From positions 2,728,072 through 2,792,071 of the forward strand of contig NC_134034.1 of NCBI RefSeq assembly GCF_964204645.1: a DNA stretch of 64,000 nt. Direction: 5' to 3'. The position numbers and the translations under genes were made by a program. This DNA comes from Tubulanus polymorphus (taxonomy: Eukaryota; Animalia; Nemertea). The notes under the pieces were generated by a model. The model had not been told where the DNA came from. It did no database searches and worked only from the letters and a program-made list of their open reading frames with translations. This document shows positions 1 to 57,981 of the stretch, piece by piece (positions within the stretch are counted from its first letter, which is position 1; the number at the start of each line of letters is the position of its first letter).

Positions 1-1267
1 GAGCCCAGAAAGAACTGGAAAGCTTGAAATTTTATTGACGTTCATTATTAGCAAATAATTCTCAATACTGTCATCAGTGAATAACATAATTTCCTACGAC
101 CAATGAAATTGTTTCGAATTTGAATATATCGACAATTGAATTGAATCGACCGGTAACCGGTAACCGGTCGAGCCCAAATATCGATGACGTAGTACACGTT
201 CGCTCAAAAATTCGTTTCCAAAAATGCGTGAAAATCTATTGAATAGAAAATATGAAAACTATTTAATTACGAAATCAAATTTTCACCGCGTTAATCGTTA
301 TTTTGAAACACAAACATTGATGACGTAGTCCACATCGACTCGCAGAAGCCCTTAGAGATATTTTAAAGAAATTATTGAAAAACTTATTGTAACGGGTTTT
401 ACGACCCAAAAAAATAAACAATGTATGTATGAATGTATTTCAAAGCATATTGATTATCATACATTTAACGCGGATATTGATTACAGCACAATCCATTTTT
501 CTCTGATTGGTTAAAACAAATCTCAGTTACTCGGCCCTCTGATTGGTTGCTTACGAAAGTTAGGCAAACTATCAACAATTCAACGGATACTCTCTGATTT
601 CACGCGAAACGAATGTATAACGCCACGCGGCCTTAAATCGGCAGAGACTAAATAAAAACCATCATCATCATCGGCAGGATTTTTATCAAAACAAACAGCA
701 AAATATTGATAGATTTTATGAAATAGATAGAATAAAAGTCGTCACTCGCCGCCGAAACGTCGCATCGCGCAAACGGCTTTTGTGTGCTTAACGCTAAAAC
801 GCGGTAAATCTAATGATGCCGGATGGATTCGGTTTTGACGTTAATACCACTGCGGACACCGCCGCCTGCTTTCGTGCGGGTAATAACCGTCATAAAAATC
901 TGCCAGCAACAGATTTGTCATCATCGGTGTCGCCGTAAACCGATTTGAAATTGATGACTTCTGACGCCTGTAGTGTGGCGACTAAATCACATTCGCCATC
1001 GTCACATATCCGCCCCGTCTGCGACTAGCGCGCGTGTCATGTGATATCGATTTATGATGTTTTTTTTTTCGGTTTCGAAAATGATTTTTAATGGCGATAA
1101 AACAAAAATGAAATAGAAATGCTTTTAAGGCAGGAAACTATTGGAAAATAGGTCTATGATTTAAAAAACATTAAACTATTAGAGCCAGGGTAGGTGTGGT
1201 GGGGGTGGGCGGGAGTTGGTAGATTCAATGTGTTTCGATTTAAGGTGACAGTGAAATAACGCACACT

Positions 1268-1332
1268 TACCAGGGTTCGAACCCGGGTCGCGTGCATAGA
1301 AAGCTAGCACGCTTACCAGTATGGGCCAAAAG
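1268..1332 (-). mobile_element. tRNA-derived SINE head; a similar element lies at about 24845-24912 (+)
   Basis: A-box-like TGGCCCATACTGG and B-box GGTTCGAACCC at tRNA spacing, without a full cloverleaf. Confidence 0.5.
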
Positions 1333-2033
1333 AATTACTCTACTATTGACCAGTAATCAATAAAAAAGCTTATCCTTTATTACGTAACGCGTGCGTTTTA
1401 TCATTCAGTTTCTTAACTGGAATTTTCCAGTTTGTGTGTAAACTTTCGAAGTCCCGGTCTTCAATTTCTGAGACTTGAATGCTACTATGCAATTAAAGAT
1501 GCCTCCTTTGGGAAGTGAGGATCCACCAGGTTCGCTAGTAGTTAGACCATTTTCGGCGCTTCAGTTACTACTGTGGCAAGCGAGGATTCGTATCGCGCTC
1601 AAACGCTTTTTGGTGCCTCGATCCATTTCAAATTTTTCAATGAACCAAGAATTTAGACAGGTTCGAAATTAACGGAGGCAGAAGTGAAGCAAAACATTTG
1701 GCCCGAAGCCAACTAAGGGTTTTCGTTTGAAGTTCGAATGTTATACTTTCGATCGGAAATATTGGATTGACAAAAAAATGAAATCATGATTCATTTCCTT
1801 CACGTAACAGAGAACAAAATTAACGATTTTGTTTCTCTGCGATGATGCGAACTGCGACAAATACAACTCAGATTTTTAAAAAGACTAATTGTGACTCAGG
1901 GCACACAGGAAGACACACCCTAAATTATTTCCGGTGTTTATTGCCCATTATCCAATTGCGTCATACAAAATCATGCACAAAACATTCTCAAATTCTTATC
2001 GACCTGTTTTGTTTTTCAGATTGTTGTCTAAAA

Positions 2034-3109
2034 ATGAGGAGCCCTATTCGCTGTAGAGCGCTTTGTCTTTTATTACTGACCTTATATGCAACTACATTTG
2101 TTACGTGCGCGAGACACTATTTACGGGTAAGTTAGTTTGATGGGTTCGAATCCCGGAATCATCTTTTTTTATCTAACAAACACTGCAATATTGTTTTCCC
2201 CTATCGTTGCAGAATTTGAAACGATTCGATTCAGCCGAAGACTGGACCCGGGATAAACTGGCTAGATGGGCGAAACGGGCCTCGTACATTGACGATAAGA
2301 GGTCGAGATGGGCATCGAAAAGAGCATCTTTAATTGACGATAAAAGGGCCTCATTGATAGATGATAAAAGGGCTTCGTTGATAGATGATAAGAGGGCTTC
2401 GTTGATAGATGATAAGAGGGCCTCATTGATAGATGATAAGAGGGCTTCTTTGATAGATGATAAGCGGGCCTCATTGATAGACGATAAAAGGGCCTCGTTG
2501 ATAGATGACAAGCGGGCCTCATTGATAGATGATAAGAGGACTCCATTGAGAGATGATAAGCGTGCATCATTTATTGATGATAAGCGGGCATCGCTTATAG
2601 ATGATAAGAGAGCCTCGCTAATAGATGATAAGAGGGCATCATTCATTGATGATAAACGATCGCGATGGCCAGCTAAAAAGGCTTCATTTATAGATGATAA
2701 AAGGGCTTCGTTCATTGATGATAAGAGGTCCGATTGGTCTGATAAGAGGGCCTCGCTGATAGACGACAAGCGATGGTTTCCTGGTAAGAGAGCGTCATTC
2801 ATTGACGATAAGAGGGCCTCATTCATCGATGATAAAAGGGCACAACCAACTGATAATAAGAGGGCCTCGTTTATCGATGATAAAAGGGCCTCGCTGATAG
2901 ATGATAAGAGGGCTTCGTTCATTGATGATAAGAGGGCCTCGTTTATTGATGATAAGAGGGCTTCGCCGAGTCAGGATAAAAGGGCCTCGTTTATCGATGA
3001 TAAGAGGGCGTCGTTTATAGATGACAAGAGGGCCTCTCGACGGGAAAAGTTAGCTGACGCGATGGTGATGCACGAATTGAAAAGGGTAAGACACAAGTGT
3101 GGCGTTTGA
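2034..3109 (+). CDS. Secreted repetitive pro-peptide (neuropeptide-precursor-like), 329 aa; coding exons 2034-2126 and 2213-3109
   Basis: Exon 1 encodes a signal peptide (MRSPIRCRALCLLLLTLYATTFVTCA-RHYLR) and ends at a GTAAGT donor. An 86-nt phase-0 intron with a CTAAC branch point and TTGCAG acceptor joins it to ORF 2207-3109. The product has 13x ASLIDD, 11x ASFIDD and 1x ASYIDD, each flanked by KR/KK. An acceptor at 2019 implies an upstream non-coding exon. Confidence 0.88.
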
Positions 3110-4159
3110 CGAGCTGTCAAACGCTAATGATAATTCGTCGTTTCATATCGAACTCTTTTTTGAAATCTACATTTTTTATCCGGTCCTCACTTTGCCCTCG
3201 CAAACTATCTCAGCACACGCACTGTCTTTGATTCGGCGTCCTAGGTTGCTCGAGGTGGTTATAGTTAACCATCCGATGAATCGATAGTAAAGAAACGACG
3301 CCGCTTTTATTGGCACTAATTGTTAAGTTATTCAATGGTTAACTTTTACCAGTTTTTATTGTCACTGTCAGTTATCCGATGGCTAACTTTAACCAGTTCT
3401 AACTGTCCGCTGGTTAACTTTATCCACCTGTTGAGCTGCTCGAACCTACATTGCAATCTATCCCTCACATACGTAGGAATTGAAATGCAGATAATTGTTT
3501 ATTCGACTAGATAACACCCCCCCCCCCATCACCCTTCCTCTTACCATAGAAGTATGGACTAGATTATGCGTCCATGCCCTTTTTCTTTAGCTCTCCGATC
3601 CAAACTCTAGTATCGCTGTCAAGCTCACAGTTGCTGACCGCTCGTTGGCTAATTATCAAACATCCTCGCACTTTCGCTATGCTACATAGTCGCTGATTGG
3701 TTGGTTCATTGCTTCGCAATCGTCAATTGCTCGAATCTCGAAAAGCGAATTGAACGCCACCTAGCGGTCAGCAATTGTTAAACGATCGTGTATAACGCCA
3801 ACAGAGGGCGTTAAAGGGTGATTGGTTGTTGTACGAAACGAATTATTATACAATTTCTAGATGATGTTAAACCGTGGCGCACAGTCCAATGATGAAGACA
3901 AAGGGCCCGTGGTTCGTCGCTATTACCAATATTGATACTATCATTAGATACATGCATGGTATGTTGTCACCTACGTATGTGTATAAACGTACTCTACATG
4001 TTGTTAAGAACTACTCAACCCCCCCCCCCCCCAAGTGTTATAGATGTATTCTGAAACCACGGACCGATTCACCCAATGCCATTCCTTTACCGATGGCAGA
4101 TCACCATCTGTCGACGTTTAAAAGTGAAAGAGTGAATCTCACGATGCTAGGGTTCAAAG

Positions 4160-4881
4160 TCTCATGATGGTGTCATCGGGTTTAGATCTCTGCTGAGGGA
4201 GGATGTGTCTACTAGGGCAGGAGTTTGTACTGTGACTGTCTCATGATGTCATCAGGTTCAAATCCCTGCTGAGGGAGGATGTGTCTATTAGGGCAGGGGT
4301 TTGTACTGTGACAGAGTCTCATGATGTCATCAGGTTCAAATCCCTGCTGAGGGAGGATGTGTCTATTAGGGCAGGGGTTTGTACTGTGACAGAGTCTCGT
4401 GATGTCATCAGACTCAAATCCCTGCTGAGGGAGGATGCGTCTACTAGGGCAGGAGTTTGTACTTTGACTGTCTCATGATGTCATCAGGTTCAAATCCCTG
4501 CTGAGGGAGGATGTGTCTATTAGGGCAGGGGTTTGTACTGTGACAGTCTCATGATGTCATCAGGTTCAAATCCCTGCTGAGGGAGGATGTGTCTACTAGG
4601 GCAGGGGTTTGTACTGTGACAGAGTCTCGTGATGTCATCAGGTTCAAATCCCTGCTGAGGGAGGATGTGTCTATTAGGGCAGGGGTTTGTACTGTGACAG
4701 AGTCTCATGATGTCATCAGGTTCAAATCCCTGCTGAGGGAGGATGTGTCTATTAGGGCAAGGGTTTGTACTGAGGCAGAGTCTCGTGATGTCATCAGGTG
4801 CAAAAAAATCCCTACTAAGAGAGGATGTGTCTAGGGCAAGGGTTTATACTGAGGCTGGCTTTCTTGATCTCATCAGGTTCA
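4160..4881. repeat. Minisatellite, 76-78-bp unit, about 9 copies
   Basis: Unit TCATGATGTCATCAGGTTCAAATCCCTGCTGAGGGAGGATGTGTCTATTAGGGCAGGGGTTTGTACTGTGACAGAGTC. Confidence 0.95.
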
Positions 4882-6094
4882 CACACAATATTACTAAACA
4901 ACTACGTATGCATACCTAAAATATCCCCTAGATGATTGGGTTTGAGGCCTACGCAACCAAAAAGCTACAACATTGAGATTTCATATCTTATATACCTCTA
5001 TTCCGCTCAAATGGTCTTCAGTATTTTGCTTTTTTACGCATCATCAAAGACAAACTTATAACTCGAAGTCAATATATCGCTTAAATCTTTCTCCGGCACA
5101 CTTTTCAATTTTGATGCCATCTTTGTTCTTAGCTTGGCCCGTTGCATTCTTAAATGATTTACCTCTTTGCCTTTTTGATTCGTTTCGATAATCGATTTGA
5201 TCTTCTGCCGCGACGTCATCATCGATGACGTCATTAATCAACATCCAAATCGACAAACAGAACGCGTTGACACGGAGGCGTTTTATAGGTGATCGCGATC
5301 AGACATCGAGGGGAACGCCCAGCTCGCCGATTCGACTTGGGGAGGCTTTAAAGCACCTTTCCATTCATTCGGAACCCCATCTCCAACTCAATTTTTCTAA
5401 ACCAACCCTGATCGATTCGGCTATGCCTGGGCAAAAGTTCTATTTACGGAGTTTAAGCTCAGCTTAGATTAATCAATAAAAAACGATGCCTAGTCGAAGC
5501 TGATCTTTCGAAGCGGACGTAATGCTTTTTCGTTGCCCACAGAAAAACGAAAATGTCGGTGCACATAAAAAAATGCCTCGGAGTGACGCAAGATATCCGC
5601 CAGTAACCTATTCTTTATATCAACAAGGCAAAGTTTCTTTTCGGTAAAAAAGAACGAGATGATTAAATCTGGCGAGATCGATAAAGACGTCTTTGTTCGC
5701 ACACAGAAACTAAAGTAAATAGATTTAAATGGGAAAACAAACATTGATTCATCGAGCGGAGATCATTTTCAACACAAAATTTCGATAGTCGATATTAAAA
5801 ATCTATCAAAAAGGCGTTTCAAGCATTTGACCCGTGATTTTTAGCGCGATGCTGAATGTCGAAATAATATAACCTTCACAATCGGTAATTCATAATCGAA
5901 AAAAATGAGTATAAATTGTTGATTTATTTTTTTGTACTCCTGTACGCCACCGCCCGACTCGCCCAGTATCTGTAATTCGCAACTACAATACGCAATATAC
6001 CTCTCAGATACATAGACAGAAATGTGATCAAAGCGAGATTGCGCGCAGAAGCCTGCGAATACTATTGCAAACCTTATAATAAGGGATTTTGAAA

Positions 6095-26896: not shown

Positions 26897-28150
26897 ATGA
26901 ATCAGTTGACTACAGTTACTTCACTTGAACCTGTGAACAATTTCACCTATACCGGCAGTTATACAACTACAACTCGTCGTCAGTATTCACTCACAGATGC
27001 GTTCTTTAGATTCATAACATATACCAGCAGTGGAAACCATTACACGAGAATATTGCTGGTGCATCCTATAGGAAATGTGTTCAATTTTCTAACTATATGT
27101 TTACTGATAAAATGTCGGAGAAGTCAGTCGATTCGTTACACGTTCCCCTATCTGATGACTATCGCGATCACTGATCAAACTGTTCTTATGTATCATTTGA
27201 TTCGTGATTACTCCCAAGTTATGATCGGATTCCTCTACAAAATCGGATTGAACAAATGTGTCATATTTTTCATGTCACTCAGTGACGTCAGAAAACGGTG
27301 TCCGTATATTTACTATTTCTATTACTATTTTCAGTATCTTCCCGAAAGGTTGGTTCCGGGGTGTTTCTGCGAAGCTCTGTTCTTTCATCGAGCAATTGCT
27401 GTATCAAACTACACAGTTCTAGTGATCGCTATCGAGAGATTTGTAGCGATTCGTTTTCCTTTCTTTCACATGAAACATTTCACCGTTCAAAGGCGTAAAA
27501 TGGCGGTTGTTGTCGTGTTGCTGTGGGCTTTTATTCTAGGAGTCTTCGACATTATTTCATTCAGTGATTTTCGCCTCGAAGAACGTAAAAGATTCAGACG
27601 CAATGAAACCATACTCGAATGGAAATGTAATTTTCCGAGTTTTCTGCTCGGATATGGACGGATTAGTAACTTTTTTTACTTTCTAGATCCTTTTATCAAA
27701 GATATGCTACCATGTTTTCAAATAGTTATATTGTCAGTAATAACTGCTGTATCACGTAATAAGATATCTGACCTGACAGCGATGAGGAGAACAGATCGTC
27801 ATCAATCTTCCGCTAGTAAAACTCTTCTTATTGTTGTTTTTTCGTTCATAGTGCTTGTTTTACCGAGTACCACATGCAGTTTATTATTTTACCTCAATAG
27901 ATTTATAGGTAGTATTTTCTCGGCTGCTGGTAAATGGTCCGCGTACCTAGTGACGCACAACAAGCTTAGTACCATGCATTACTTAGGGAGGTGGTTATTA
28001 ATATTCCGGCAATCAGTTTTCTGTGTAAACTTTTTCATATACGTAGGAACCATTCCGGTTTTCCGAAAACAATTCATTCACTTATTCATCTGTTCGAAAC
28101 GAGCAAATTCAATTGAGAAAAAAATGAAACAGAAAATGCATCAGGTGTGA
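26897..28150 (+). CDS. Intronless rhodopsin-class GPCR, tandem copy 1 (417 aa; resembles the FMRFamide/sex-peptide-receptor-related invertebrate expansions)
   Basis: Seven hydrophobic segments; GN in TM1, D in TM2, Cys 25 residues before IAIERFVAIRFP, ECL2 Cys, LP in TM6, NFFIY in TM7, N-terminal sequon. Confidence 0.92.
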   Translation: MNQLTTVTSLEPVNNFTYTGSYTTTTRRQYSLTDAFFRFITYTSSGNHYTRILLVHPIGNVFNFLTICLLIKCRRSQSIRYTFPYLMTIAITDQTVLMYHLIRDYSQVMIGFLYKIGLNKCVIFFMSLSDVRKRCPYIYYFYYYFQYLPERLVPGCFCEALFFHRAIAVSNYTVLVIAIERFVAIRFPFFHMKHFTVQRRKMAVVVVLLWAFILGVFDIISFSDFRLEERKRFRRNETILEWKCNFPSFLLGYGRISNFFYFLDPFIKDMLPCFQIVILSVITAVSRNKISDLTAMRRTDRHQSSASKTLLIVVFSFIVLVLPSTTCSLLFYLNRFIGSIFSAAGKWSAYLVTHNKLSTMHYLGRWLLIFRQSVFCVNFFIYVGTIPVFRKQFIHLFICSKRANSIEKKMKQKMHQV

Positions 28151-29581
28151 AGTTAGTTCGACGACGGGCGAATTGACGACCGACGAATTTCATTTGTCTA
28201 AAAGTCAAACGCAAAGCTAATATTCGAGCCACACTAATTATACCCGCGGTAAACTTATCGAGTGATTCATCAAATTTCCTACATCGGTTACAGCTGCTCA
28301 CGACCCCGGTCCAAAATTCAAAATCCGCGCGAAGTGAAGAACGGATATCATTTCTCGCGGTCTTGGGAGCCTAAAATGTATTTCATGCACACGCCCGCTG
28401 ATTGGGTGAGAAGACCTACTAATATTTAACTTTTTCGTTCGAGAACAATCTAAATAAAGTTATCTGCACCCAACCGTATGATAGATCATTAAATGAATTG
28501 AAAAAAAAACTAAATAAACTTATTTTGAAGCATCTTCACCTAAACCGACAACATGAATCCGAGTTGTATCGGGAATCCGACATCAAACCAACCTTCACAG
28601 CCGCCACACCGACTGATGGCTTCAAGCCCGAATCTATGATTCCAAACAGGAAAATACGGGTCAAACGTATAAGTCGGGCACCAGAATGCCAAAAAGAGGT
28701 GTCTAGAAATGCATAGCAGGTTCTTTCAACAAAAATACCATACTGACAAATTAGGTATTTTTTAACATTAGACCTAAAATTCATTGGTCCAATGAAATAA
28801 ATATCCTCATTATTGGTATTGTCAACTAATTTTAGTTTTGTCATCGTTAGCGTTTGAATCTCGCTCTAAAAACAGTGCAGTTTTTAGCCGATTTTCGTAT
28901 TTCGAATTACCTCATTCAATCAAGCTCTCGTCGTGGCAGGATCAGAATCCCTGGTTAAACTGATTCGCGGTTGTGAACCAGGCGTCGAAAAATTATCTGA
29001 AACTTCTAATTCAAATTGGCCAATTAACCCGAATTAGAGGCTTAATCCTCGTACCGGGTCCAGGAGTGCAATTTAGTCAGTCAATGTGCCAGTAGGGGAT
29101 TGATCTTCAGTTAGGTTAGGATCCACCAGGTGATTGTGAACGGGAATGATAATCGGGGTTTAGCTGAATGCTCATAAAACCCTAGATAACATCCGAGCTG
29201 TTTATCGAGATCCGGGCTTCACGCTGGTAATTCGGCAGTTTATGGAGGGCGCTCGAGAATCTGACTCGAGCGAACGGTTGTCGCATTTCTCAACGATAGA
29301 TTTTGTACAGAAATTTTGCTAGCTGAACACAACTTGAAAATGTTGGTTAAACATCTCACTTTATTACTATATCACCCTAACTATACAAATTCTACACTGA
29401 AAACATCGATTTCAAAAATTTATCTTTTCAGTGACGTATAGAACTAGAATATATATGAATATTTGATAGTACGAGACATTTTCTAGCAAGTTTTGTCACA
29501 GATATGATTATAGACCCGAGCCGCCAGTGAACAGCCGTCTGACGTCAGACTCAGTGACGTCTGCGCTGCGCTGATCATAAC

Positions 29582-30835
29582 ATGAATCAGTTGACTGCAG
29601 TTACTTCACTTGAACTTGTGAACAATTTCACCTCAACCGGCAGTTATACAACTACAACTCGTCGTCAGTATTCACTCAGAGATGCGTTCCTTAGATTCAT
29701 ATCATATACCAGCAGTGGAAACCATTACACGAGAATATTGCTGGTGCATCCTATAGGAAATGTGTTCAATTTTCTAACTATATGTTTACTGATAAAATGT
29801 CGGAGAAGTCAGTCGGTTCGTTTCACGTTCCCCTATCTGATGACTATCGCGATCACTGATCAAACTGTTCTTATGTATCATTTGATTCGTGATTACTCCC
29901 AAGTTATGATCGGATTCCTCTACAGAATTGGATTGAACAAATGTGTCATATTTTTCATGTCACTCAGTGACGTCAGAAAACGGTGTCCGTATATTTACTA
30001 TTTCTATTACTATTTTCAGTATCTTCCCGAAAGGTTGGTTCCGGGGTGTTTCTGCGAGGCCCTGTTCTACTTTCCAGCAATTGCTGTATCAAACTACACA
30101 GTTCTAGTGATCGCTATCGAGAGATTTGTAGCGATTCGTTTTCCTTTCTTTCACATGAAACATTTCACCGTTCAGACGCGTAAAATGGCAGTTGTTGCCG
30201 TGTTGCTGTGGGCTTATATTCAAGGAGTTTACGATATTATTTCGTCCAGTGATATTCACCTCGAAGAGCGTAAAAGATTCAGACTTAATGAAACCATACT
30301 CGAATGGAAATGTAATTATCCGAGTTTTCTGCTCGGATATGGACGGATAGGTTACGTTTTTTCATTTCTTGATCCTTTTTTCACAGATATGCTACCATGT
30401 TTTCTAATAGTTATTTTATCAGTAATAACTGCTGTATCACGTGATAAGATATCTGACCTGACAGCGATGAGGAGAACAGATCGTCATCAATCTTCAGCTA
30501 GTAAAACTCTTCTTATTGTTGTTTTTTCGTTTATAGTGCTTGTTTTACCGAGTGCCACATGCAGTTTATTATTTTACCTCAATAGATTTATAGCTAGTAT
30601 TTTCTCGGCTGCTGGTGAAAGCTCCGCGTACCTAGTGACGCACTACACGCTTGGTCCCATGCATGACTTAGAGAGGTGGTTATACATATTCCGGCAATCA
30701 GTTTTCTGTGTAAACTTTTTCATATACGTAGGAACCATTCCAGTTTTCAGAAAACAATTCATCCAATTATTCACCTGTTCGAAACGAGCAAATTCAATCG
30801 AGAAAAAAATGAAAAACAAAGTGCATCAGGTGTGA
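29582..30835 (+). CDS. Intronless rhodopsin-class GPCR, tandem copy 2 (417 aa)
   Basis: Co-linear paralog of copy 1 with the same motifs and an intact ORF. Confidence 0.92.
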   Translation: MNQLTAVTSLELVNNFTSTGSYTTTTRRQYSLRDAFLRFISYTSSGNHYTRILLVHPIGNVFNFLTICLLIKCRRSQSVRFTFPYLMTIAITDQTVLMYHLIRDYSQVMIGFLYRIGLNKCVIFFMSLSDVRKRCPYIYYFYYYFQYLPERLVPGCFCEALFYFPAIAVSNYTVLVIAIERFVAIRFPFFHMKHFTVQTRKMAVVAVLLWAYIQGVYDIISSSDIHLEERKRFRLNETILEWKCNYPSFLLGYGRIGYVFSFLDPFFTDMLPCFLIVILSVITAVSRDKISDLTAMRRTDRHQSSASKTLLIVVFSFIVLVLPSATCSLLFYLNRFIASIFSAAGESSAYLVTHYTLGPMHDLERWLYIFRQSVFCVNFFIYVGTIPVFRKQFIQLFTCSKRANSIEKKMKNKVHQV

Positions 30836-32230
30836 AAGTAAGTTCGACGACGGACGAATTGACGACCGACGAAGTTCATTTGTCTCAAAGTCAAACGCAA
30901 AGCTAATATTCGAGCCACACTAATTATACCCGCGGTAAACTTATCGAGTGATATATCAAATTTCCTATATCGGTTACAGCTACTCATGACCCCGGTCCAA
31001 AATTCAAAATTCCCGCGAAGTGAAGAACGGATATCAAACCGCTATGGAAATATCATTTCTCGCGGTCTTGGAGCCTAAAATGTATTTCATGCACACGCCC
31101 GCTCATTGGGTGAGAAGACCTACTTATATTTAACTTTTTCGTTCGAGAACACTCTAATAACGTTATTTTCACCCAACCGTATGATAGATCATTAAATGAA
31201 TTGAAAAAAAAACTAAATGAACTTATTTTGAAGCGTTTTCACCTGAACCGACAACATGAATCCGAGTTGTATCGGGAATCCGACATCAAACCAAACAGGA
31301 AAGTACTGGTCAAACGTATTAGTCGGGCACCAGAATGCCAAAAAGAGGTGTCTGTCTAGAAATGCATAGCAGGTTCTTTCAACAAAAATACCATACTGAC
31401 AAATTAGGTATTTTTTAACATTAGACCTAAAATTCATTGGTCCAATGAAATAAATATCCTCATTATTGGTATTGTCAACTAATTTTAGTTTTGCCATCGT
31501 TAGCGTTTGAATCTCGCTCTAAAAAGAGTGCAGTTTTTAGCCGATTTTCGTATTTCGAATTACCTCATTCAATCAAGCTCTCGTCGTGGCACGATTAGAT
31601 TCCCTGGTTAAACTGATTCGCGGTTGTGAACCAGGCGTCGAAAAATTATCTGAAACTTCTAATTCGAATTAGCCAATTAACCCGAATTAGAGGCTTAATC
31701 CTCGTACCGGATCCAGGAGTGCAATTTAGTCAGTCAATGTGCCAGTAGGGGATTGATCTTCATTTAGGTTAGGAACCACCAAGTGATTGGGCGGGAATGA
31801 TAATTAGGGTTTAGCTGAATGCTCATAAAACCCTAGATAACTTGCGAGCTGTTTCGAGATCCGGGCTTCACGCTGGTAATTCGGCAGTTTATGGAGGGCG
31901 CTCGAGAATCTGACTCGAGCGAACGGTCGTCGCATTTCTCAACGATAGATTTTGTACAGAAATTTTGCTAACTGAACACAACTTGAAAATGTTGGTTGAA
32001 CATCTCGCTTTATTACTATATCACCGCCACTATACAAATTCTACACTGAAAACATCGATTTCAAAAATTTATCTTTTCAGTGACGTATAGAACTAGAATA
32101 TATATGAATATTTGATAGCACGAGACATTTTCTAGCAAGTTTTGTCACAGATATGATTATAGACCCGAGCCGCCAGTGAACAGCCGTCTGACGTCAGACT
32201 CAGTGACGTCTGCGCTGCGCTGATCATAAC

Positions 32231-33484
32231 ATGAATCAGTCGACCGAAGTTTCCTCTCTGGAATTTGTGAGCAATCTCACTACAACCGGCAGTTATACAA
32301 CTACAACTCGTCGTCAGTATTCACTCACAGATGCGTTCTTTGCATTCCTTTCGTATACTAGCAATGGAAACCATTACACGAGAATATTGCTGGTGCATCC
32401 TATAGGAAATGTGTTCAATTTTCTAACTATATGTTTACTGATAAAATGTCGGAGAAGTCAGTCGATTCGTTACACGTTCCCCTGTCTGATGACTATCGCG
32501 TTTGCAGATCAAACTGTTCTTATGTATCATTTGATTCGTGATTACTCCCAAGTTATGATCGGATTCCTCTACAGAATTGGATTGAACAAATGTGTCATAT
32601 TTTTCATGTCATTCACTGACGTCAGAAAACGGTGTCCGTATATTTACTATTTCTACTACTATTTTGAGTATCTTCCCGAAAGGTTGGTTCCGGGGTGTTT
32701 CTGCGAGGCCCTGTTCTACCGCCCAGCAATTGCTGTATCAAACTACACAGTTCTAGTGATCGCTATCGAGAGATTTGTAGCGATTCGTTTTCCTTTCTTT
32801 CACATGAAACATTTCACCGTTCAGACGCGTAAAATGGCGGTTGTTGCCGTGTTGCTGTGGGCTTATATTCAAGGAGTTTACGATATTATTTCGTCCAGTA
32901 ATATTCGCCTCGAAGAACGTAAAAGATTCAGACGCAATGAAACCATACTCGAATGGAAATGTAATTATCCGAGTTTTCTGCACGGATATGGACGGAAAGG
33001 TTACGTTTTTTCATTTCTTGATCCTTTTTTCACAGATATGCTACCATGTTTTCTAATAGTTATATTGTCAGTAATAACTGCTGTATCACGTAATAAGATA
33101 TCTGACCTGACAGCGATGAGGAGAACAGATCGTCATCAATCTTCAGCTAGTAAAACTCTTCTTATTGTTGTTTTTTCGTTCATAGTGCTTGTTTTACCGA
33201 GTGCCACATGCAGTTTATTATTTTACCTCAATAGATTTATAGCTAGTATTTTCTCGGCTGCTGGTGAAAGCTCCGCGTACCTAGTGACGTACTACACGCT
33301 TGTTCCCATGCATCAATTAGAGAGGTGGTTATTAATATTCCGGCAATCAGTTTTCTGTGTAAACTTTTTCATATACGTAGGAACCATTCCAGTTTTCCGA
33401 AAACAATTCATTCACTTATTCACCTGTTCGAAACGAGCAAATTCAATCGAGAAAAAAATGAAACAGAAAATGCATCAGGTGTGA
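32231..33484 (+). CDS. Intronless rhodopsin-class GPCR, tandem copy 3 (417 aa)
   Basis: Co-linear paralog with an intact ORF. Confidence 0.92.
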   Translation: MNQSTEVSSLEFVSNLTTTGSYTTTTRRQYSLTDAFFAFLSYTSNGNHYTRILLVHPIGNVFNFLTICLLIKCRRSQSIRYTFPCLMTIAFADQTVLMYHLIRDYSQVMIGFLYRIGLNKCVIFFMSFTDVRKRCPYIYYFYYYFEYLPERLVPGCFCEALFYRPAIAVSNYTVLVIAIERFVAIRFPFFHMKHFTVQTRKMAVVAVLLWAYIQGVYDIISSSNIRLEERKRFRRNETILEWKCNYPSFLHGYGRKGYVFSFLDPFFTDMLPCFLIVILSVITAVSRNKISDLTAMRRTDRHQSSASKTLLIVVFSFIVLVLPSATCSLLFYLNRFIASIFSAAGESSAYLVTYYTLVPMHQLERWLLIFRQSVFCVNFFIYVGTIPVFRKQFIHLFTCSKRANSIEKKMKQKMHQV

Positions 33485-34875
33485 AGTTAGTTCGACGACG
33501 GGCGAATTGACGACCGACGAAGTTCATTTGTCTCAAAGTCAAACGCAAAGCTAATATTCGAGCCACACTAATTATACCCGCGGTAAACTTATCGAGTGAT
33601 ACATCAAATTTCCTATATCGGTTACAGCTGCTCACGACCCCGGTCCAAAATTCAAAATTCGCGCGAAGAAAAGAACGGATATCAAACCGCTATGGAAATA
33701 TCATTTCTCGCGGTCTTGGAGCCTAAAATGTATTTCATGCACACGCCCGCTGATTGGGTGAGAAGACCTACTTATATTTAACTTTTTCGTTCGAGAACAA
33801 TCTAAATAAAGTTATCTGCACCCAACCGTATGATAGATCATTAAATGAATTGAAAAAAAAACTAAATGAACTTATTTTGAAGCGTTTTCACCTGAACCGA
33901 CAACATGAATCCGAGTTGTATCGGGAATCCGAAATCAAACCAAACAGGAAAATACGGGTCAAACGTATTAGTCGGGCACCAGAATGCCAAAAAGAGGTGT
34001 CTGTCTAGAAATGCATAGCAGGTTCTTTCAACAAAAATACCATACTGACAAATTAGGTATTTTTTAACATTAGACCTAAAATTCATTGGTCCAATGAAAT
34101 AAATATCCTCATTATTGGTATTGTCAACTAATTTTAGTTTTGTCATCGTTAGCGTTTGAATCTCGCTCTAAAAAGAGTGCAGTTTTTAGCCGATTTTCGT
34201 ATTTCGAATTACTTCATTCAATCAAGCTCTCGTCGTGGCACGATTAGATTCCCTGGTTAAACTGATTCGCGGTTGTGAACCAGGCGTCGAAAAATTATCT
34301 GAAACTTCTAATTCGAATTAGCCAATAAACCCGAATTAGAGGCTTAATCCTCGTACCGGGTCCAGGAGTGCAATTTAGTCAATGTGCCAGTTGGGGATTG
34401 ATTTTCAGTTAGGTTAGGATCTACCAGGTGATTGGACGGGAATGATAATTGGGGTTTAGCTGAATGCTCATATAACCCTAGATAACTTGCGAGCTGTTTC
34501 GAGATCCGGGCTTCACGCTGGTAATTCGGCAGTTTATGGAGGGCGCTCGAGAATCTGACTCGAGCGAACGGTCGTCGCATTTCTCAACGATAGATTTTGT
34601 ACAGAAATTTTGCTAACTGAACACAACTTGAAAATGTTGGTTCAACATCTCGCTCTATTACTATATCACCGCCACTATACGAATTCTACACTGAAAACAT
34701 CGATTTAAAAAATTCATCTTTTCAGTGACGCATAGAACTAGAATATATATGAATATTTGATAGTACGAGACATTTTCTAGCAAGTTTTGTCACAGATATG
34801 ATTATAGACCCGAGCCGCCAGTGAACAGCCGTCTGACGTCAGACTCAGTGACGTCTGCGCTGCGCTGATCATAAC

Positions 34876-36129
34876 ATGAATCAGTTGAATGCAGTTACTT
34901 CACTTGAACTTGTGAACAATTTCACCTCAACCGGCAGTTATACAACTACAACTCGTCGTCAGTATTCACTCAGAGATGCGTTCTTTAGATTCATATCATA
35001 TACCAGCAGTGGAAACCATTACACGAGAATATTGCTGGTGCATCCTATAGGAAATGTGTTCAATTTTCTAACTATATGCTTACTGATAAAATGTCGGAGA
35101 AGTCAGTCGGTTCGTTTCACGTTCCCCTATCTGATGACTATCGCGATCACTGATCAAACTGTTCTTATGTATCATTTTATTCGTGATTACTCCCAAGTTA
35201 TGATCGGATTCCTCTACAGAATCGGATTGAACAAATGTGTCATATTTTTCATGTCACTCACTAACGTCAGAAAACGGTGTCCGTATATTTACTATTTCTA
35301 TTACTATTTTGAGTATCTTCCCGAAAGGTTGGTTCCGTGGTGTTTCTACGAGTCCTTGTTCTACTTTCCAGCAATTATTGTATCAAACTACACAGTTCTA
35401 GTGATCGCTATCGAGAGATTTGTAGCGATTCGTTTTCCTTTCTTTCACATGAAACATTTCACCGTTCAAAGGCGTAAAATGGCGCTAGTTGCCGTGTTGC
35501 TGTGGGCTTATATTATAGGAGTTTACAACATTATTTCATTCAGTAATATTCGCTTCGAAGATCGTAAAAGATACAGACGCAATGAAACCATTCACGAATG
35601 GAAATGTACTAATCCAAGTTTTCTGCTCGGATATGGACGGATTAGTCGCATTTTTTCATTTCTTGATCCTTTTTTCACAGATATGCTACCATGTTTTCTA
35701 ATAGTTATATTCTCAGTAATAACTGCTGTATCACGTGATAAGATATCTGACCTGACAGCGATGAGGAGAACAGATCGTCATCAATCTTCAGCTAGTAAAA
35801 CTCTTCTTATTGTTGTTTTTTCGTTTATAGTGCTTGTTTTACCGAGTGCCACATGCAGTTTATTATTTTACCTCAATAGATTTATAGCTAGTATTTTCTC
35901 GGCTGCTGGTGAAAGCTCCGCGTACCTAGTGACGTACTACACGCTTGGTCCCATGCATGACTTAGAGAGGTGGTTATACATATTCCGGCAATCAGTTTTC
36001 TGTGTAAACTTTTTCATATACGTAGGAACCATTCCAGTTTTCCGAAAACAATTCATCCAATTATTCACCTGTTCGAAACGAGCAAATTCAATCGAGAAAA
36101 AAATGAAAAACAAAGTGCATCAGGTGTGA
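34876..36129 (+). CDS. Intronless rhodopsin-class GPCR, tandem copy 4 (417 aa)
   Basis: Co-linear paralog with an intact ORF. Confidence 0.92.
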   Translation: MNQLNAVTSLELVNNFTSTGSYTTTTRRQYSLRDAFFRFISYTSSGNHYTRILLVHPIGNVFNFLTICLLIKCRRSQSVRFTFPYLMTIAITDQTVLMYHFIRDYSQVMIGFLYRIGLNKCVIFFMSLTNVRKRCPYIYYFYYYFEYLPERLVPWCFYESLFYFPAIIVSNYTVLVIAIERFVAIRFPFFHMKHFTVQRRKMALVAVLLWAYIIGVYNIISFSNIRFEDRKRYRRNETIHEWKCTNPSFLLGYGRISRIFSFLDPFFTDMLPCFLIVIFSVITAVSRDKISDLTAMRRTDRHQSSASKTLLIVVFSFIVLVLPSATCSLLFYLNRFIASIFSAAGESSAYLVTYYTLGPMHDLERWLYIFRQSVFCVNFFIYVGTIPVFRKQFIQLFTCSKRANSIEKKMKNKVHQV

Positions 36130-38475: not shown

Positions 38476-39426
38476 TTACGAAGTGTTGCAGACGATTTTC
38501 GTACAGAAATAACGACGTATTTCTCGACCAAGTAAAAGATATATGTAAAAGTTTATCGAGTAATTACACAATAGTAATTGACTGAAAACGTCTAAAAGAT
38601 ATTCTTTCCGTTCTGTGGTGATCGGCAGGAAAGCGGTTATAGCGTTTGGAAGTGTACATATCGCAAAAGCGAGTGAAACCGTTACGAGCATTATCGTCGT
38701 CCGTTTCGATTTAGTAGTTTTCTGATCATCAGAAGACAACAACATTCTCGAACCCGTGAACAATTGAATTATTATAACCGAATTCGATGTCAGAATCAAA
38801 GATAAAGGCAGAACGTAAACGTGGACGACAAATGTGATGAAAATTCCAAATTGGTCCGATAACTCGTAGAAACATCCGAATAATTGGTCCGACATTTTCA
38901 TTATCAGCGTCGGATGAATGCCCACCCCAAATACGTTTATCGCGAAAATAATGAAAATGACGAATCTAGCGAATCTCGGTGTACATATCAAACGAGATGT
39001 GAACGGGAAGAGAACAACTGCCGCGCGTTCTAGAGATATCGCTACTATTAACCAGGAACTGCAGGCGCCCGTAGTCGCCATCACAGACTCGTAGATCTGA
39101 CAACTGATCATCGAATTCACCACGAATGTAGCGAGACCGACGCGCAGGAAAACGCACTGTAAAACGGGCATTAGTGCGAAATATATGCCGAACACGAAAT
39201 CACTGACCGACAAAACGATCAGATAGTTAGCGTAAGATAAACCGCGGAATCTGCGACTTATCATTATCAGGAATGTAGCCGAATTCCCGAAAGCTCCGAA
39301 CACAAAGAGCAGGACCAGAACGACCAATGAAAGAGTACGGTAGACGCCGGACTTGTTTGCCAAAGACATGAGGACGATGAAACTGCTATGAGGTCGACCG
39401 AACAACTGCGTTCGAGTTAAGTTCAT
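38476..39426 (-). CDS. Intronless rhodopsin-class GPCR, 316 aa, a different subfamily from the tandem array
   Basis: FGN (TM1), LSVSD (TM2), C...SSWLIVAISLERAAVVLFP (TM3), FAICTLP (TM6), NYSINFYIY (TM7). Confidence 0.9.
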   Translation of the reverse strand: MNLTRTQLFGRPHSSFIVLMSLANKSGVYRTLSLVVLVLLFVFGAFGNSATFLIMISRRFRGLSYANYLIVLSVSDFVFGIYFALMPVLQCVFLRVGLATFVVNSMISCQIYESVMATTGACSSWLIVAISLERAAVVLFPFTSRLICTPRFARFVIFIIFAINVFGVGIHPTLIMKMSDQLFGCFYELSDQFGIFITFVVHVYVLPLSLILTSNSVIIIQLFTGSRMLLSSDDQKTTKSKRTTIMLVTVSLAFAICTLPNAITAFLPITTERKEYLLDVFSQLLLCNYSINFYIYLLLGREIRRYFCTKIVCNTS

Positions 39427-46728: not shown

Positions 46729-47985
46729 TTAATGCATTTTATGTTTCATTTTTTCTGTGTCGTATTTATTCGCTTGAAACCGGTTAAAACGGGTAAATAA
46801 ATGAATAAATCGTTTTCGGAAAGCTGGGATGGTGCCGACGTATATGAAAAAGTTGGTGCAGAAAACCGATTGCCGAAATATATATAACCACTTTTCTAGA
46901 TAATACACTTTCCGGAGCTCCCAGTCCGTCGCCCTGTACGCGGGCCATTTACCAATAGCTTGGAAAATAGTGCTTAAAAATGTATTGAAATAAAACAATA
47001 AATTACATATAACACTCGGTAAAACGAGCGCAATGAACATAATAACGACAATGAGAAGAGTTTTACTGGCTGAAGATTGATGACGATCTGTACTCCTCGT
47101 CGCTCTCACGCCAGATCTCTTATTACGCGATACAGCAGTTATTACTGATAATACCACAACTAGAAAACATGGCAAAATCTCTTTGACCAAAGGATCCAGA
47201 AAATGAAACGCACGATTTATAAATGGAATCGAAGATTGAAAAGGAACATAACCACATATCCACCTAAGGATGGTTTCGTTTTGTCCGTATCTCTCGATTT
47301 CCCGAAGACGAATATCCCTGTAAGAAACGATGTTATAAACTCCTAAAACATAACCCCACACGACAACAGCGGCCACCGCAATTCTACGTCTTTCAACGGT
47401 GAAATGCTTCATGTGAAAGAAAGGCAAACGAATCGAAACAAGTCTTTCGACGGCGATGACTAAAACTGTGTAGGTCGATACGGTAAGGGCCGGGCGGTAG
47501 AACAAGTATCCGTAGAAACACCACGGAACCAACCTTTCGGGTAGATACTCAAAATAGTAATATAGATTGTAAATGTACGGACATCGTTTCCGGACGTCAA
47601 CCAAAGACATGTAAAATACGTCACAATTACTCAATCCGATGTCGTAGAGGAAATTGACCATCAACTGGGAATAATCAGCAATCAGGTGATGTATGATCAC
47701 GGTTTGATCAGTGATCGCGATAGTCATCAGATAGGGGAACGTGTAACGAACCGACTGACTTCTCCGACATTTTATCAGCAAAACCACGGTCAGAATATTG
47801 AAGAAATTCCCCAGTGGAAGTAACAGCAAGATTCTCATGTAATTGTTTCCATTGTTAGTGTACAGGAGGAACCTGAAGAACGCACTTCCGAGCGAATGCT
47901 GACGACGAGTTGTGGTTCTGTAATTGACGGTTGTGGTGAAATTGTTCGCAGATTCCAGTGAGGAAACTGCACTAAACTGATTCAT
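46729..47985 (-). CDS. Intronless rhodopsin-class GPCR, diverged fifth paralog (418 aa), inverted relative to the array
   Basis: Shares LLIKCRRSQSVRYTFPYLMTIAITDQT, RKRCPYIY, DRHQSSASKTLLIVV and IFRQSVFCTNFFIYVGTIP with copies 1-4; the 5' leader is also homologous. Confidence 0.92.
   Translation of the reverse strand: MNQFSAVSSLESANNFTTTVNYRTTTRRQHSLGSAFFRFLLYTNNGNNYMRILLLLPLGNFFNILTVVLLIKCRRSQSVRYTFPYLMTIAITDQTVIIHHLIADYSQLMVNFLYDIGLSNCDVFYMSLVDVRKRCPYIYNLYYYFEYLPERLVPWCFYGYLFYRPALTVSTYTVLVIAVERLVSIRLPFFHMKHFTVERRRIAVAAVVVWGYVLGVYNIVSYRDIRLREIERYGQNETILRWICGYVPFQSSIPFINRAFHFLDPLVKEILPCFLVVVLSVITAVSRNKRSGVRATRSTDRHQSSASKTLLIVVIMFIALVLPSVICNLLFYFNTFLSTIFQAIGKWPAYRATDWELRKVYYLEKWLYIFRQSVFCTNFFIYVGTIPAFRKRFIHLFTRFNRFQANKYDTEKMKHKMH

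Positions 47986-56412: not shown

Positions 56413-57981
<1,569 letters not shown>

Follow-up and report, generated by a model that had tools for sequence, protein, structure and literature searches.

A spliced ribbon-worm gene encoding 25 copies of AS[L/F/Y]IDD is probably a divergent Tubulanus ortholog of the AxxxDF (ASWLDF) neuropeptide precursors

Results

A three-exon gene for a predicted secreted precursor

The AS[L/F/Y]IDD-precursor locus is a genuine ribbon-worm gene, transcribed and spliced, which encodes a predicted secreted precursor. It lies near the beginning of the window, by which we mean the whole stretch of 64,000 nucleotides of Tubulanus polymorphus DNA that was analyzed, and it comprises the following parts.

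2020..2033, + strand: 5' end of the first coding exon, untranslated (acceptor at 2019/2020, contig alignment)
2034..2126, + strand: coding exon 1, 31 codons, MRSPIRCRALCLLLLTLYATTFVTCARHYLR (translation and spliced contig)
2127..2212, + strand: intron 1, 86 nt, GTAAGT...TTGCAG, phase 0 (joint in an X3 contig)
2213..3085, + strand: coding exon 2, 291 codons (translation and repeat finding, with 3085 as the exact last position of X3 record 18)
2774..2785, + strand: WFPG unit before KR, predicted to yield WFP-amide (translation)
3086..3860, + strand: intron 2, 775 nt, GTAAGA...TCTAG, phase 0 (one X3 contig joint)
3861..3935, + strand: coding exon 3, 24 codons (MMLNRGAQSNDEDKGPVV-RR-YYQY) and TGA stop (X3 record 19 on 3860-3959)

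Summed exon by exon, the three coding exons give a precursor of 346 aa (31 + 291 + 24). Its transcription and both of its splices are directly demonstrated by contigs of four public runs from one study, coded and without tissue labels, which were aligned to positions 1-5800 of the window and among which run X3 behaves as RNA. A 685-letter X3 contig covers 2019-2125 and then 2212-2398, that is, 2126 is joined to 2213 and 86 bases bounded by GT..AG are skipped (joint 2125->2212, cut +1), with 107 letters on the shorter side of the joint. The sequence-only reading had proposed a signal-peptide exon missed by the open-reading-frame track and had named the splicing of intron 2127-2212, beforehand, as a point on which its proposal could be refuted; the X3 contig removes exactly these 86 bases, and the hydrophobic N-terminus is indeed on the spliced exon. 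This exon begins at the ATG at 2034 with a basic n-region, which is followed by the hydrophobic core ALCLLLLTLYATTFV, a likely cleavage site after VTCA and then RHYLR; the signal peptide was called by eye from the basic start, the hydrophobic core and the small residues at VTCA.

At the other end of the array, one X3 contig joins 3085 to 3861 (joint 3084->3860, cut +1) and skips 775 bases bounded by GT..AG, with 29 letters on the shorter side. Since one contig ends at 3085 and another joins 3085 to 3861, the stop at 3107-3109 is intronic. The gene end first placed at 3109, with a tail VRHKCGV, was thus wrong: a third exon had been missed, and VRHKCGV lies outside the protein. The last 24 codons read MMLNRGAQSNDEDKGPVVRRYYQY, the stop is at 3933-3935 in the third coding exon, and the 3' untranslated region extends to at least 3959 (X3 record 19). 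Upstream, X3 record 17 aligns to 2019-2125 from its letter 392 on, and the 391 further letters of upstream exon in the X3 contig are absent from positions 1-5800 of the window, which places at least one untranslated exon upstream and outside that interval. The gene stands at a single genomic locus, and the spliced form is therefore no retrocopy.

A contig of run X2 (record 9, 2022-2491) starts at the exon-1 acceptor, beginning at 2022 after 9 non-fitting letters, leaves intron 1 unspliced and differs at 9 letters. This contig stems from the other allele, as an RNA that retains the intron or as a precursor RNA, and incompletely spliced RNA is therefore also present; read through intron 1, this RNA would stop after ...HYLRVS.

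Three further features of the window lie outside the precursor gene.

26897-36129 (+ strand), 38476-39426 (- strand) and 46729-47985 (- strand): six intronless open frames of rhodopsin-family G protein-coupled receptors (GPCRs) (Pfam)
4167-4881: 78-bp satellite, 9 copies, 90% identity, tRNA T-arm-like GGTTCAAATCC (repeat finding and run depth)
56681-57490, + strand: reverse-transcriptase open frame, a retroelement fragment (Pfam domain RVT_1, 81 bits)

The GPCR cluster, about 23-45 kb downstream of the precursor gene, consists of four tandem 417-aa copies with 86-89% identity, one 418-aa copy on the other strand (65%) and one 316-aa copy (21%). These frames score 35-70 bits with Pfam 7tm_1 and have an ERF motif instead of DRY, and a word search with a 417-aa copy returned no match at E <= 1e-5. 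The run depth of the 78-bp satellite reaches up to 700 times that of its flanks, which shows that this genome contains it in very high abundance.

The units are held constant peptide by peptide

Exon 2 opens with NL-KR-FDSAEDWTRDKLARWA-KR and closes with AS-RR-EKLADAMVMHEL-KR. The array at 2279-3031 translates into 25 AS[L/F/Y]IDD units and 7 variant units. Translation reproduced exactly the counts proposed from the sequence (13 ASLIDD, 11 ASFIDD and 1 ASYIDD) and recovered all of the proposed single units, namely SRWAS, SRWPA, SDWSD, WFPG, TPLRDD, AQPTDN and ASPSQD. KR follows each of the 25 units and also precedes them, apart from one unit that is preceded by KK. Every hexapeptide unit ends in DD-KR with no Gly before the dibasic site, and the predicted peptides are hence non-amidated.

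Between the 25 units, mean pairwise pS is 0.75 versus a pN of 0.033. All replacement differences are at residue 3, pN being 0 at Ala1, Ser2, Ile4, Asp5, Asp6, Lys and Arg. At the DNA level, 22 of the 25 units are distinct. All eight letters of the coding sequence that vary across the runs are synonymous, a message that stays the same even though some of the eight may be repeat units aligned one register off. These values directly demonstrate purifying selection on the units and on their KR sites, and they bear out the idea that free codons and fixed residues reflect selection on the peptide: the array is old, each of its peptides has been conserved together with its cleavage sites, and it is not the product of recent slippage. 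Translation, splicing and the pS/pN contrast likewise support the broader prediction of a secreted, dibasic-delimited, multi-copy and non-amidated precursor whose peptides are under selection.

The same data decide on the most skeptical reading, namely that the open frame spans a 24-nt minisatellite and has no function. Tandem Repeats Finder gives a 24-nt period over 2318-3036 with only 71% matches; the genome contains many satellites of 24-nt period with open frames, and the antisense of the array is open as well (249 aa, window 2173-2922, - strand, with repeats of ...LLSSINEA...). We regard the antisense frame as a by-product of the repeat, because the splice signals and the contigs place the transcript on the + strand. 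Against a minisatellite stand the + strand splicing with a signal-peptide exon, the extreme pS/pN contrast, allelic changes that are synonymous only, and units that are 71% alike in DNA and identical in protein; the splicing and selection data already refute this reading, to which we give practically no weight.

Similarity to a Lineus precursor

Scanned against Pfam, exons 1 and 2 yielded sub-threshold noise only (Iron_traffic, Gp5_trimer_C), and a word-index protein search with exon 2 returned no match at E <= 0.01. The gene product is probably missing from the word-index protein collection, and its relative in Lineus shares too few 5-mers with exon 2 for detection by word index. An exhaustive phmmer (HMMER) search of 1.84 billion representatives returned 376 matches, most of which are repeat-driven. 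One of them, with an E-value of 2e-8, is P0105, the Lineus longissimus protein XP_064647831.1, which is annotated as 'uncharacterized' and equals the published ASWLDF precursor apart from a few residues. Among the 150 matches listed, a repeated dibasic-AxxxDx-dibasic pattern in precursor-like proteins was found only in P0105, in P0151, a second heteronemertean copy that carries ASWLDT, and in P0059 and P0044. We rejected P0030 (KK-APEADD) and P0074 (RR-PSYNDD), whose AxxxDD-like or DD-ending units belong to low-complexity tracts of unrelated proteins, as well as P0040, whose KR-ASLVP units form an unrelated repeat tract.

Pairwise BLASTP against P0105 gives an E-value of 6e-19 and 40-48% identity in the register KRASx[IL]Dx. 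Such E-values are inflated by repeat periodicity, and unrelated 8-residue repeats outscored Lineus in phmmer. We permuted the order of residues within the units, a procedure that removes the effects of periodicity and composition: the true order ranked 4th of 720 against P0105 (z 3.6, p about 0.006), whereas against P0033, an unrelated precursor with KR-flanked hexapeptides, the same permutation placed it 30th of 720. The similarity to the Lineus protein is a direct observation, and these ranks suggest, with moderate confidence, that it goes beyond KR periodicity and composition.

The plan of the two genes is also shared. In Lineus (gene L015) the coding exons measure 29, 212 and 27 aa, and in Tubulanus 31, 291 and 24 aa. 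All introns are in phase 0, and both genes have one intron closely following the signal peptide and the other some 25 codons ahead of the stop. P0151 begins at the start of Lineus exon 2 and departs right after VIRE, which is the end of Lineus exon 2. A three-exon, phase-0 plan is widespread in genes of peptide precursors, and for this reason we take the shared plan as supportive only. Comparison of exons 1 and 3 with the Lineus exons gave no BLAST similarity, and by eye the exon junction offers only VMHE../MML in Tubulanus versus VIRE/MLL in Lineus (slash, exon boundary).

Comparison with the published AxxxDF family

The AxxxDF proneuropeptides, labeled ASWLDF in the supplement, were described by Thiel et al. 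(2021, Mol Biol Evol, PMC8557429), who report them from nemerteans and brachiopods only. As given there, heteronemerteans have KR-ASWLDF-KR and in some cases ASWLDM (Cerebratulus, Notospermus), Baseodiscus has ATW[HL]DF, the palaeonemertean Cephalothrix hongkongiensis has KR-ASWIDT-KR in a sequence that is a partial transcript, and brachiopods have KR-AK[FV][NVF]DF-KR, including AKFNDF. All these members are hexapeptides that lack amidation and lie between dibasic sites. Ala1 and Asp5 are the sole positions invariant across all members listed, and each nemertean precursor has one Trp spacer, which is PWLEN, AWLEG, AWLDN or PWFGD (PMC8557429). In the species table of the paper, AxxxDF is not recorded for Tubulanus polymorphus.

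We compared the supplement sequences with the Tubulanus precursor by eye. In both, a predicted signal peptide is followed by many KR-bounded, non-amidated hexapeptides, and Ala1 and Asp5 are present in 25/25 Tubulanus units without any replacement change. The nemertean members further have in common with it Ser2, Ile/Leu4, an aromatic or hydrophobic residue 3 and one Trp-[LF] spacer each; from this correspondence, drawn by eye, the single WFPG may be the counterpart of their single Trp spacer. Cephalothrix ASWIDT and AS[L/F/Y]IDD share four of six residues (Ala1, Ser2, Ile4 and Asp5), equal length, KR flanks and the lack of amidation. The differences lie in residue 6, which is Asp in 25/25 Tubulanus units versus Phe, Met or Thr in the family; in residue 3, which is Leu, Phe or Tyr versus Trp in the nemertean members; and in the 25 copies almost without spacers, versus about 10-12. 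The heteronemertean tail ...ETIKVIREMLLKDK...TPSMR, which is helix-like, is not recognizable in the Tubulanus gene. Phe6 is typical of the family and not universal, as illustrated by ASWIDT in Cephalothrix, ASWLDM in Cerebratulus and Notospermus, and ASWLDT in P0151.

The initial proposal of a lineage-restricted or undescribed family, which by its own terms a match to a published family would refute, fails in view of the AxxxDF match (PMC8557429), and given this match the suggested likeness to pedal peptide/orcokinin precursors needed no comparison. A full-text search of the literature gave no match for ASFIDD and spurious matches only for ASLIDD; ASWLDF and AxxxDF were found in Thiel et al. 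and its preprint only.

For the Lineus AxxxDF precursor, mass spectrometry identified GNTGDLKPWLEN, ALGSWIEAKQT and GNDNPMDPETIKVI, which start or end at dibasic sites; as reported in the relevant part of the paper, spacers were detected and the family hexapeptide was not among the detected peptides (PMC8557429). These dibasic-bounded peptides indicate that the family precursor is processed in vivo.

Such processing bears on whether the Tubulanus gene makes instead a secreted non-neuronal product, be it of gland, mucus or proboscis and serving as a defense, a pheromone or an antimicrobial pro-region, or an acidic/basic repeat protein that stays uncut. Nemerteans secrete many peptides in mucus, the contigs come from runs without tissue labels, and acidic hexapeptides with free C-termini would be unusual transmitters. 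We nevertheless hold a product of this kind to be quite unlikely: KR shows no replacement change across 25 copies, which points to selection on the cleavage sites, the architecture is that of a multi-copy proneuropeptide, and the Lineus relative, which was catalogued among neuropeptides, undergoes cleavage at dibasic sites (PMC8557429).

A single candidate ortholog in the genome

No match to KRASWxD exists anywhere in the 268-Mb genome, and the control pattern KRASx-I-D has 23 matches that all cluster at the precursor locus, along with 10 scattered singles at background level. It follows that the locus is the only candidate ortholog in this genome. A protein search of the genome likewise found one such locus and 126 further weak matches; the candidate paralogs that were translated (L003, L005, L006 and L008) were rejected as satellites of 24-nt period. 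Loci for P-domain convertases and for 7B2 are present in the genome. Microsynteny was not recovered for the one neighbor checked, an OLF/PAN gene that stands beside the Lineus gene and is on another contig here.

The genome and the published transcriptome appear to represent different animals. The distinctive junction YSYKRPSFMRIG found in the published 'T. polymorphus' FxRIamide transcript does not occur in this genome, whose own FxRIamide precursor (L021, G000:C11:9186200-9187700, - strand) is a single exon with >15 copies of [AGPS]SFMRIG; it is clearly related to the published transcript, but differs from it throughout its length. These differences indicate that genome and published transcriptome come from related tubulanids that are different taxa or populations, a caveat that applies to the absence of AxxxDF for T. 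polymorphus in PMC8557429. One older run under the same species label contains next to none of the words of the stretch.

The gene could also be a lineage-specific tubulanid precursor of independent origin, its likeness to ASWLDF and ASWIDT being a convergence of short KR-framed peptides. Phe6 and Trp3 are indeed missing, no similarity was detected outside the repeats, the one neighbor checked is not shared, and the unrelated P0033, with its APTVTD units, also scores well (E 2e-15, permutation rank 30/720). We consider independent origin unlikely, though, as four of six residues are identical to those of palaeonemertean ASWIDT and two of these, Ala1 and Asp5, are the family invariants. The permutation rank of 4/720, the common exon and phase plan and the single Trp-[LF] spacer common to all nemertean members argue against it as well, as do the lack of any other candidate ortholog in the genome and the occurrence of the family in both other sampled nemertean lineages.

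Other peptide precursors

Two proteins of Macrostomum lignano, P0059 (UniRef A0A1I8G648, 'conserved secreted protein') and P0044 (A0A1I8IA06, a fused gene model), fit AxxxDF. They combine a signal peptide with KR-flanked, non-amidated AALADF, AALSDF, ASLSDF and ASLADF, and thus have Ala1, Asp5 and, like ASLIDD, Leu3; they differ from the Tubulanus precursor in belonging to a flatworm, in the Phe6 terminus, in His-rich flanking regions and in their 7-10 copies. No description of these AALADF proteins was found in the literature searched, and their motif makes it likely that they are related to the AxxxDF family.

Achatin-type precursors (GFAD/GFGD), which occur in molluscs, annelids and nemerteans, are also short, multi-copy, non-amidated and KR-flanked, and their peptides combine an aromatic residue with Asp. 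These are tetrapeptides starting with Gly, unlike the units described here, and no sequence match to the AS[L/F/Y]IDD precursor was found. Thiel et al. treat achatin as a family apart, for which they list a partial sequence from Tubulanus (PMC8557429).

The ENA metagenome assemblies contain precursor-like proteins with KR-flanked APTVTD/FTVTD or LTIVTD units (P0033, at loci L016 and L017, and P0141). Their source is a eukaryote, and they represent a further non-amidated multi-copy peptide with an Asp end.

Discussion

We propose, with a probability of about three in four, that this single-copy, three-exon gene is a divergent ortholog of the AxxxDF (ASWLDF) precursors and not the founder of a new family. 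The argument is one of sequence and gene structure: the invariant Ala1 and Asp5, the further identity of Ser2 and Ile4 with palaeonemertean ASWIDT, the permutation result against Lineus and the standing of the locus as sole candidate in its genome. The published survey probably missed this tubulanid ortholog, which is divergent in the change of Trp3 to Leu/Phe, in its C-terminal Asp and in its 25 copies (PMC8557429).

From the predicted architecture and from the processing of the Lineus relative, we infer the following course for the Tubulanus product. The N-terminal signal peptide would direct the precursor into the secretory pathway and be cleaved off, prohormone convertases would cut after each KR, and also after KK and RR, and a carboxypeptidase would trim the basic residues. 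The products would be 13 ASLIDD, 11 ASFIDD and 1 ASYIDD with free acidic C-termini, co-released with FDSAEDWTRDKLARWA, EKLADAMVMHEL, the tail peptides and a few single peptides, of which WFPG might be converted to WFP-amide. Secreted, presumably from neurons, the hexapeptides would act as intercellular signals on a receptor.

Relative to its relatives, the Tubulanus peptide would have exchanged Trp3 for Leu, Phe or Tyr, a path that is short at the codon level, TGG to TTG being one base change and TTG to TTY one more. In the present array, TTG encodes 8 of the 13 Leu residues; it is a single step away from the Trp codon TGG, and the Phe codons TTY are one step further. The last residue would have become Asp, and the copies would have risen to 25, almost without spacers.

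A wider reading, which we put forward as speculation and think improbable, is that AxxxDx is an old spiralian signaling system of flatworms, nemerteans and brachiopods in which Ala1 and Asp5 alone are fixed, and that in tubulanids an acidic C-terminus replaced the hydrophobic Trp3/Phe6 pharmacophore. Were this true, a receptor that co-evolved or was switched would be expected, and one of the six clustered orphan rhodopsin-type GPCR genes would be a candidate. The flatworm members, if confirmed, would extend the age of the AxxxDF family.

The general picture of spiralian peptide signaling is unchanged by this gene. As a putative AxxxDF ortholog, the locus supplies what was missing from the published catalogue of nemertean neuropeptides, where Tubulanus has no AxxxDF entry, and it is one that a motif search keyed on W..DF would overlook. 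It suggests that a short multi-copy peptide can drift far within one phylum under intense copy-by-copy selection, and the survival of Ala1 and Asp5 only would narrow the requirements for receptor recognition in the orphan AxxxDF family.
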